Shown here: positions 7,011 through 28,932 of the stretch, piece after piece
Layout: each line of letters starts with the position of its first letter
How positions within the stretch are numbered: the first letter of the stretch is position 1
Assembly: GCA_964270895.1 (NCBI GenBank)
Contig: OZ185453.1
From: Podarcis filfolensis
Taxonomy: Eukaryota
Length of the DNA: 64,000 nt
Direction: 5' to 3' (one strand)
The notes under the pieces: model-generated
The model's input: the letters and a program-made list of their open reading frames with translations, nothing else
What the model was told of the DNA's origin: nothing
The model's database searches: none
Program-made: the position numbers and the translations under genes

Positions 7011-7440
7011 NNNNNNNNNNNNNNNNNNNNNNNNNNNNNNNNNNNNNNNNNNNNNNNNNNNNNNNNNNNNNNNNNNNNNNNNNNNNNNNNNNNNNNNNNN
7101 NNNNNNNNNNNNNNNNNNNNNNNNNNNNNNNNNNNNNNNNNNNNNNNNNNNNNNNNNNNNNNNNNNNNNNNNNNNNNNNNNNNNNNNNNNNNNNNNNNNN
7201 NNNNNNNNNNNNNNNNNNNNNNNNNGGGGAAATCCTCTGTGCCCTGTACTTTTTGACATNNNNNNNNNNNNNNNNNNNNNNNNNNNNNNNNNNNNNNNNN
7301 NNNNNNNNNNNNNNNNNNNNNNNNNNNNNNNNNNNNNNNNNNNNNNNNNNNNNNNNNNNNNNNNNNNNNNNNNNNNNNNNNNNNNNNNNNNNNNNNNNNN
7401 NNNNNNNNNNNNNNNNNNNNNNNNNNNNNNNNNNNNNNNN
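7011..7440. other. Two N blocks (7011-7225, 215 nt; 7260-7440, 181 nt) around a 34-nt called island in the proximal KCMF1 3'UTR
   Basis: Directly visible; first block starts 2 nt after the stop codon. Confidence 0.95.
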
Positions 7441-24774: not shown

Positions 24775-24809
24775 AGATGTTCATCAAGCTTCTTTTTCAG
24801 AATGACTGA
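24775..24809 (-). CDS. HOOK3: HOOK3 exon 17
   Basis: 35 nt SVILKKKLDEH(L); ttttag/gtaagt. Confidence 0.94.
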
Positions 24810-26415: not shown

Positions 26416-27781
26416 CCACCACTGGGTTTTGTTGCCAACATTAGCATACAGATGAATTGTAAAAATGTTAGTTCCGCCCATAAAATATAACAAAATGCTT
26501 TTTAAAGAAAGATTAAGGTTGTTCTGCTTTGTACCGCTCATGTACAATGTAATGTGTATCGATAAATTAATTTCAAGTCCAGTTCACACAGCAGCCCCTA
26601 AGCAAGGTCCTACGTGACCCATTCCATCTGTAGCAGCTACCTGTTCACTCACCCACCTCGAAAGATGAAGGAATCCTTGAAGCTGTCAGAAGGTTAGTGA
26701 AAAGTAGAGGTACCCTCCAAACCATATGCATGGCCAGGCAGAATGGTCTCATTTAGTGCCTGCTGCATGAACTGACCCACAGCTGCATTGGGCATGCTAT
26801 GTTACAGGCTGGGTATGTGGCTGCTCTGTTCTGGCAGCAATTTTGTCAACTGTCACGCAGCTATTACCCTCAATGACTTTGTAAAAAAAATGAGATAAGG
26901 TCGAGGGAGTTAACCGGTGCCACACAAGCCAAAAACATAGCTGCTACATACATGCAATGTAGCCCTATTCAGACAAGGTTCATAGCATATGTGCACCGTT
27001 GATCTAAATGCACTAACTTGACCAAGTATGGATTTTTTTTGCTTTCTAAATATATAAGAATGCATAGTACATAAATTTGTTAAACCCACTTCCAAATTGT
27101 TCAAAAAGGTATAGCTAGGTTTTGATGAGCATATTGCAAGTCTCATGTAAAAATCTTGTATATGCAATTGACATGTACATTGCCATGTGCAACATTTGCA
27201 AAGGAGCGGTGATGATCTCCAATGCCCTCCCCTTCAGAAGGTGCAGTTGAGTCATACATGGGTTTCATGCCAATTCCTACACAGAAGTGTGTTCATTTAG
27301 GAATGTTATAAAATATTAAGGCACCCCTATTTAAGAAACAAGGGATTTACAGCCCATGTCATGATTTCTGTCATAAGAACAATGCGAGAACACCGCAATA
27401 AATGTAAATTTTAATGTGGCTCAGTCCTGTATGGAAACGCCTACATAAAAATAGTGTAAAAGCATTAACTACAAATTAAATAACTGAAATTGTGGTTGAT
27501 TGCAGTATTTGTAAACTTCTTCACCTGTGTCTAAGGAAGCATGCAACAAACACAGCTGAAGCATTGCCATGATAACAACACACATAAAAATATTTGGGAG
27601 ATGTACGCCCCCTAAGGTTCTGCTAAGCCACAGGTGCACAACACGTAGAAAGTGTGAAACATAACATGAATAAGAACGGAAACTTTATCCATTTAAGTTT
27701 CTCTTAAAAAGAAAAAACAGAGCCACAAATCGGCATTGACTGATTAAGAGCAGATTGAAGTAAATAGGAAGCCATACTCAC

Positions 27782-27787
27782 AATAGC
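27782..27787 (-). CDS. HOOK3: Candidate 6-nt HOOK3 microexon (GCT ATT = Ala-Ile) between exons 16 and 17
   Basis: tactaat branch motif, pyrimidine tract, tttctgctgaag|GCTATT|gtgagtat; phase 0 on both sides. Confidence 0.75.
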
Positions 27788-28302
27788 CTTCAGCAGAAAC
27801 CCGTGCCGAGAGACAGAGGCAACAGATTAGTACGAAGCAAACAGCAGCCAACAGAATAAACTACATAGTATCTTTCTGAAGAGAACACATTTAAAGCAAG
27901 GCATTCTCAGAGCATGCACATTTTCTTCTCTCTCTGCTCTCTAAGGTCTCTTCCTCCTGTCTCATCCTCTAGAGAGCTGTGGAAAGCTAGCACAAACCCG
28001 TTTCAAGTATATGAATAAGTGCTCTAATTAAAACACAAATGCTGCAACAAGACATCTTTCAATAAAGCACATACACGAATATCAACTCGACCTAAGCTTT
28101 CAAAAGATGGTGGCTGAGGTCACTGTAAGGACTACATGCGAAAGCAACCAGAAGTAATTAGATGAGGTGAATGGCAGCCCACCTAACAATGATACAAAAT
28201 GCAAATCTCCCCCCACCCCATTCAAAAGTGGCTGGGGCTGTACAGCATATACACCCAAGGAAAAGTAAAAAACTGACACACTTTGCTGAATGCTTTTAAG
28301 AG

Positions 28303-28844: not shown

Positions 28845-28932
28845 ATCTTCTGTTTTTAAACCTTGCTCCTGTAAGGATTTCTGCAGTTCTTCAACCTGAG
28901 ATTGTACTTCAAGCAGTCTCTGATTTACAAGC
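28845..28932 (-). CDS. HOOK3: HOOK3 exon 16
   Basis: 88 nt LVNQRLLEVQSQVEELQKSLQEQGLKTED; tag/gtaagt. Confidence 0.96.

Follow-up and report, generated by a model that had tools for sequence, protein, structure and literature searches.

The window is the whole 64,000-nt stretch of Podarcis filfolensis DNA that was analysed, and the HOOK3 exons for residues 20–720 run along its minus strand from 56450 to 18816, encoding a protein around 92% identical to that of the snake Pseudonaja textilis. Two runs of N (7011–7225 and 7260–7440) together take up 396 bases of the window. The intron considered here is 4035 nt long, separates KTED from SVILKKKL, and is phase 0 on both sides: the upstream exon ends in complete codons (...AAA ACA GAA GAT) at 28845, giving the peptide ...QEQGLKTED, and the downstream exon opens, again on a complete codon, with TCA GTC ATT CTG (SVIL) at 24809. 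Within this intron lies a candidate 6-nt exon, GCTATT, whose surroundings comprise the following features, listed in the direction of transcription.

28845..28932, minus strand: upstream HOOK3 exon, encodes (x)LVNQRLLEVQSQVEELQKSLQEQGLKTED; phase 0 end, donor GTAAGT
27758..27941, minus strand: conserved intronic island, the one stretch of this intron alignable with its bird counterparts; narrower against the elephant shark, wider against the snake
27913..27918, minus strand: upstream TGCATG, within the island; kept in the snake and the elephant shark, GCATG in quail, lost in Parus
27826..27832, minus strand: branch-point-like TACTAAT; branch A at 27827, 39 nt before the 3′ splice-site G
27808..27819, minus strand: pyrimidine element CCTCTGTCTCTC, which includes TCTCTC; the leading half of the bipartite UCUCUC...UGC enhancer
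27793..27795, minus strand: UGC motif at −8 to −6, inside a conserved TCTGC that is present in all four GCTATT-bearing orthologues
27782..27787, minus strand: microexon GCTATT (Ala-Ile), 6 nt, with AG at 27789–27788 just before it
27772..27781, minus strand: 5′ splice site of the microexon, GTGAGTATGG, which follows the donor consensus as far as +8
24775..24809, minus strand: downstream HOOK3 exon, encodes the squamate-type peptide SVILKKKLDEHL; phase 0 start

The original prediction had placed a hidden Ala-Ile microexon at this position, and every detail of the layout it described—TACTAAT, a pyrimidine tract, UGC at −8 to −6, AG, GCTATT, and a strong donor—matches the sequence, as do the phases at 28845 and 24809, between which inclusion would give KTED-AI-SVILKKKL. 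It had also read the arrangement as an SRRM3/4-type signature, and this agrees with the published description of SRRM3/4 targets, whose donor is strong, whose AG is remote from both the branch point and the pyrimidine tract, and which contain the bipartite element UCUCUC[N1-50]UGC (10.1101/2024.09.17.613571). The exon is a frame-preserving one within the 3–27 nt range (6 nt between phase-0 exons), the UGC lies between the branch point and the AG near the 3′ splice site, TCTCTC (27813–27808) stands 12 nt before the UGC, and the branch A is a distant 39 nt from the AG. The donor GTGAGTAT (27781–27774, minus strand) agrees with the consensus at each position from +1 to +8 and does not vary among the orthologues, its strength being judged by that consensus. 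In the window sequence, no AG occurs between the branch site and the microexon acceptor, and the base at −3 of the acceptor is A (AAG).

Across the 64-kb window, each strand has one match to AG-N6-GTRAGT, a density at which around 0.06 matches would be expected in this 4035-nt intron. When open in-frame candidates of 3–30 nt are allowed, the intron holds two of them, GCTATT and a 30-nt one; the motif alone is therefore weak evidence, and the decisive evidence is comparative. Judged by its cross-species conservation and by annotated isoforms, the GCTATT exon is far more than a chance match. The 30-nt candidate (26682–26653, minus strand), which is an in-frame AG...GTGAGT interval encoding LQGFLHLSRW with a CACTAAC-like branch site, falls within no conserved block and was rejected as probably a product of chance.

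HOOK3 loci from quail (L002), the snake Pseudonaja (L003), the elephant shark Callorhinchus (L004), the great tit Parus (L005), and the butterflyfish Chelmon (L001) were compared, with the window intron set against the orthologous introns of the first four by blastn at an E cut-off of 0.001. A single block passes in each of these four comparisons, and the microexon lies inside it every time.

Snake block: window 28050–27738, 81% identity, E 4e-79
Great tit block: window 27941–27758, 77% identity, E 1e-30
Quail block: window 27924–27758, 76% identity, E 6e-27
Elephant shark block: window 27862–27761, 75% identity, E 2e-12

The remainder of the intron has diverged beyond alignment, and the island is thus still under constraint. 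The string AG-GCTATT-GTGAGTATGG is unchanged in all four species, with the microexon itself identical at six of six bases in each. Conservation of the flanking intron is mainly upstream, as in SRRM3/4 microexons: between −72 and −1, 51–62 of 72 positions are identical to the window (62 in the snake, 59 in the tit, 56 in quail, and 51 in the elephant shark), and from +1 to +20 the matches are 20, 19, 18, and 14 of 20, respectively. The branch heptamer reads TACTAAA in the snake, TACTAAT in Parus, TACTGAT in quail, and TACTAAT in the elephant shark, and both the TCTCTC run and TCTGC are kept in all of them. An alignment of the island across vertebrates had been proposed with the original prediction, and AG-GCTATT-GT indeed proves to be conserved from the elephant shark to birds. 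In Chelmon, the DNA at the same junction reads AG-ACTATA-GTAAGTAT, and upstream of it the alignment with the island of tetrapods and sharks is lost (24 of 72 positions identical). The exon and around 100 nt of regulatory intron are conserved from chimaeras to lizards and birds.

Gene models carry the same exon. Protein searches gave several hundred HOOK3 sequences, which were sorted by their insert at the junction: 192 have none, ten have AI, five TI, three TA, and one VS. The AI insert is found in cartilaginous fishes (Callorhinchus milii X1, Amblyraja radiata X1, and the transcript-derived P0316, which has cartilaginous-fish flanks), in reptiles (the turtles Chrysemys picta X5 and Mauremys reevesii X4 and the snake Pseudonaja textilis X1), in a bird (the parrot Nestor notabilis), and in mammals (the bat Pipistrellus kuhlii X4 and the monkeys Trachypithecus francoisi X4 and Rhinopithecus roxellana X3). 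AI is the sole difference between sibling isoforms in Trachypithecus, Pipistrellus, Rhinopithecus, and Amblyraja, and TA is the sole difference in Etheostoma. Because isoforms and DNA are shared across these groups, the exon is no younger than the last common ancestor of jawed vertebrates, and the predicted antiquity of the switch is borne out by AI models that extend from cartilaginous fishes to monkeys and by DNA conserved from the elephant shark to birds. On this comparison of sequences, Ala-Ile is the ancestral product, with Thr-Ile or Thr-Ala at the HOOK3 junction of percomorph fishes. The reading of GCTATT as a real and very old alternative exon of HOOK3, encoding Ala-Ile, is thus supported.

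In mammals, a 6-nt HOOK3 exon is already catalogued, as the original prediction allowed that it might be: HsaEX0030349 (chr8:43000271-43000276, 6 nt) appears in VastDB-based published tables, which also list a 6-nt HOOK2 event. In HEK293 cells, SRRM4 induces 314 exons that include HsaEX0030349 (Head et al. 2021, PMC7935315 S4 Data), whose PSI rises from 35.9 with GFP to 88.8 with SRRM4; in cancer cell lines, wild-type SRRM4 likewise induces both this exon and the 6-nt HOOK2 exon HsaEX0030341 (PMC7935315 S6 Data). Among the non-neural TCGA normal-tissue means, its inclusion is around 7%–21% where it changed significantly (PMC7935315 S3 Data). The HOOK3 and HOOK2 events are both classed as 'PN MIC', that is, microexons enriched in endocrine pancreas and neural tissue (Juan-Mateu et al., 10.1101/2022.04.02.486809 Supp. 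Table 2), and the HOOK3 orthologues MmuEX0023183 and RnoEX0002002 exhibit a delta-PSI of 61 in mouse and 59 in rat, respectively (10.1101/2022.04.02.486809). Supp. Table 3 of that paper gives HOOK3 values of 8.9, 14.7, 36.8, and 70.7, a series which, going by the paper's text, is taken to represent control, low, mid, and high SRRM3 in HeLa cells. Two zebrafish microexon papers list no HOOK3 entry in their supplements. With 36% inclusion in control HEK293 cells, the human HOOK3 exon is enriched rather than strictly neural. The predicted neural or endocrine switch thus accords with the 'PN MIC' class and SRRM4 induction of the mammalian event. We infer that HsaEX0030349 lies at the junction described here, from the same gene, the same length, and monkey isoforms that differ by AI at this point.

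By analogy with the mammalian exon, inclusion of GCTATT in P. filfolensis would be SRRM3/4-dependent and would occur in neural tissue and islets. Default splicing is proposed to skip the exon, joining 28845 to 24809. In neurons and endocrine pancreas, SRRM3 and SRRM4 would act via the UGC upstream of a weak, distant 3′ splice site, and the two proteins and their UGC enhancer would bring about early recognition of that site in an exon too short for exon definition, with the strong donor—complementary to U1 through +8—helping to define GCTATT. Inclusion would place Ala-Ile between ...KTED and SVILKKKL..., and the AI-including isoform of this genome would contain KTEDAISVILKKKL. Taken as a whole, and with these proposals for splicing and those for the protein set out below, the best explanation of the locus is very probably that it holds the orthologue of the known 6-nt microexon of vertebrate HOOK3.

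Other readings of the island can be set against this one. Were it an intronic element conserved for a different role, such as an enhancer or a non-coding RNA, the AG...GT would be incidental and never spliced, and open-frame AG-N(3-30)-GTRAGT alone does arise around 0.2–0.3 times per kb in the window; such a role is, however, scarcely credible given that the very dipeptide encoded here is inserted in gene models from at least 15 species, that the splice signals are the best-conserved bases, and that a 6-nt HOOK3 exon has a measured PSI in human, mouse, and rat. Almost no probability attaches either to the view that the functional unit is a longer exon beginning at an upstream AG, with the upstream conservation being coding. 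At least 14 bird proteins carry a 26-residue insert, FLLLAAVLLYTNVISVSWHGLLLK followed by AI (78 nt), and in Parus the 72 nt upstream of GCTATT are open and begin at an in-frame AG. In the window and the snake, however, the frame is open for 39 nt only and there is no in-frame AG; in quail and the elephant shark, the TAG of the 3′ splice site is an in-frame stop; lineage-specific indels break the frame; and a hydrophobic insert of 24 residues would interrupt the coiled coil. With the frame closed in quail, elephant shark, snake, and window, the bird 78-nt exon was rejected as the source of the upstream conservation, and the 78-nt form can be no more than an alternative acceptor peculiar to birds or an artefact of gene models. 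In the Parus major model, the 78-nt exon (L005:76574-76651), which starts at the AG 72 nt upstream, replaces the 6-nt one, and bird proteins in which FLLLAAVLLYTNVISVSWHGLLLK precedes AI, as a translation of the regulatory intron, include P0208, P0197, P0378, P0221, P0224, and P0212.

It is also conceivable, albeit very unlikely, that this lineage inherited the exon but no longer, or hardly ever, splices it in, as a decaying pseudo-exon. This reading draws on GCACG, which at about −24 to −20 takes the place of a GCATG conserved elsewhere (window 27806–27802, minus strand, around 20 nt upstream of the acceptor; GCATG in snake, tit, quail, and elephant shark). Against it, the core signals are all preserved, the first 20 intron bases after the exon are identical throughout to those of a snake whose annotation has the exon (P0390), and the island is still constrained in an intron that has otherwise diverged beyond alignment. 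Given GCACG in place of GCATG and the A at −3, usage of the exon in this species could differ quantitatively.

That RBFOX, acting on downstream GCAUG, rather than SRRM3/4 is the main regulator has likewise only a slight chance of being correct. TGCATG occurs at 27918, 27545, and 26956 on the minus strand of the intron, as the original prediction stated, and the three occurrences compare with 0.99 expected (P ~0.07); one is upstream and conserved. The downstream pair, at 27545 and 26956, falls in none of the conserved blocks, not even the wide one shared with the snake, and the arrangement of an RBFOX-activated exon is therefore not seen. RBFOX bound upstream of an exon usually represses it, and the conserved motifs are upstream, whereas the SRRM3/4 response of the mammalian exon has been measured. 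Hence, the predicted motif positions stand (all three), but the downstream pair is not conserved, the number is about that of chance, and regulation through the downstream motifs was rejected. The change of GCATG to GCACG alters a conserved upstream RBFOX-type core in this lineage.

If the exon is included as proposed for SRRM3/4, its two residues would fall within a coiled coil. In AlphaFold2 monomer models of around 200 residues, one uninterrupted helix crosses the junction both with and without AI, with a pLDDT at the junction of 95–98 and 85–93, respectively; as both isoforms form one helix and monomers cannot show dimer register, these models were rejected as a means of discriminating between them. 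By a simple heptad count, the downstream L-x6-L-x6-L-x6-I column occupies position d of the upstream register without AI and position f with AI, and AI thus breaks the heptad phase by two residues, although the count is crude and the second downstream core position is ambiguous. The predicted change of coiled-coil register agrees with this shift from d to f.

Residues 553–624 of human HOOK3 form a parallel coiled coil that was crystallised with KIF1C, the binding region being 591–624 (PMC12152161), and residues 451–718 fold back on 1–450 in the autoinhibited FHF complex (PMC11996680). Human residue 553 lies 12 residues past the microexon site, which falls inside the 451–718 arm. PDB entries for the HOOK3 region are 9kns and 8qat; in the PDB search, the solved HOOK3 fragments begin after the microexon site, and HOOK2 was absent. 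In the proposed scheme, AI would move the tail that binds KIF1C, FTS, and FHIP out of heptad phase with the dynein-activating half, and this shift may tune autoinhibition or partner geometry. It is a tentative possibility, and a somewhat doubtful one, that AI acts as a functional switch of HOOK3 fold-back autoinhibition or of the orientation of the dynein half relative to the cargo/KIF1C half. If so, the dynein/kinesin-3 adaptor would be tuned differently in neurons and endocrine cells. No paper on the function of the HOOK3 AI exon was found in the literature searched, and a search with the peptide string also gave no match; the recent structures of the region make the effect of a two-residue insertion on the HOOK3 coiled coil testable.

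Comparison with known systems places the window exon closest to HsaEX0030349 and its orthologues MmuEX0023183 and RnoEX0002002, which it resembles in gene and 6-nt length, with nothing structural to distinguish them. The flanks differ—GLKTED/SVILKKKLDEHL in the window versus GSKAED/SVLLKKKLEEHL for HsaEX0030349—as does one upstream GCATG, which is GCACG in the window, the orthology of the two being inferred rather than aligned. The HOOK3 6-nt exon is thus already known, both from many vertebrate gene models (NCBI) and from published VastDB-based tables of SRRM3/4 targets, and adds little as a discovery; its value is that every structural claim made from the sequence alone was borne out. The teleost HOOK3 variant shares the junction, the 6-nt length, and annotated isoforms, with donor GTAAGTAT, but differs in encoding Thr-Ile (ACTATA, Chelmon) or Thr-Ala and in an upstream intron that matches at 24 of 72 positions.

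The HOOK2 microexon (HsaEX0030341; MmuEX0023175, RnoEX0042364) is likewise a 6-nt exon of a dynein adaptor, paralogous to HOOK3, SRRM4-induced and classed as islet plus neural, but it belongs to a different gene. Its dipeptide is probably likewise AI, at the corresponding junction. If HOOK2 does carry a homologous switch, the origin of that switch would precede the vertebrate genome duplications. The optional two-residue HOOK2 exon of the original prediction is matched by the listed 6-nt HOOK2 event and by mouse Hook2 isoforms, which differ by two coiled-coil residues and arise in brain development (Biology Open, PMC11554263); in rat INS-1E cells, knock-down of Srrm3 lowers the PSI of the Hook2 exon from 65 to 25 (10.1101/2022.04.02.486809).

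With the SRRM3/4 microexon programme at large (CLIP1 6 nt, APBB2 6 nt, DCTN1 15 nt, KIF1C 23 nt), the window exon shares a length of at most 27 nt, preservation of frame, a UGC near a weak 3′ splice site, a distant branch point, a strong donor, and a conserved upstream intron, and there is no difference in kind; set against the programme, the human HOOK3 exon has a relatively high baseline inclusion in non-neural cells. The SRRM4-induced list that holds HOOK3 also contains KIF1C (23 nt), DCTN1 (15 nt), DCTN4 (21 nt), CLIP1 (6 nt), and KIF1B (18 nt) (PMC7935315). The presence in one list of HOOK3 and its partners or relatives in transport hints at a co-ordinated neural retuning of dynein/kinesin-3 adaptors.

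Two further kinds of variant were seen close to the junction. In Cetorhinus (P0318), Dromaius (P0223), and Larus (P0307), annotated variants read the start of the intron as VS or VSRN, so that in these species the KAED exon would use an alternative donor lying 6 or 12 nt further downstream. Mammalian isoforms of 671 or 673 residues (P0264, P0265, P0274, P0275, and others) skip the 47 residues KEKLIRLQHENK...NELETEN, a skipping event that lies just upstream of the junction and is independent of the AI microexon.
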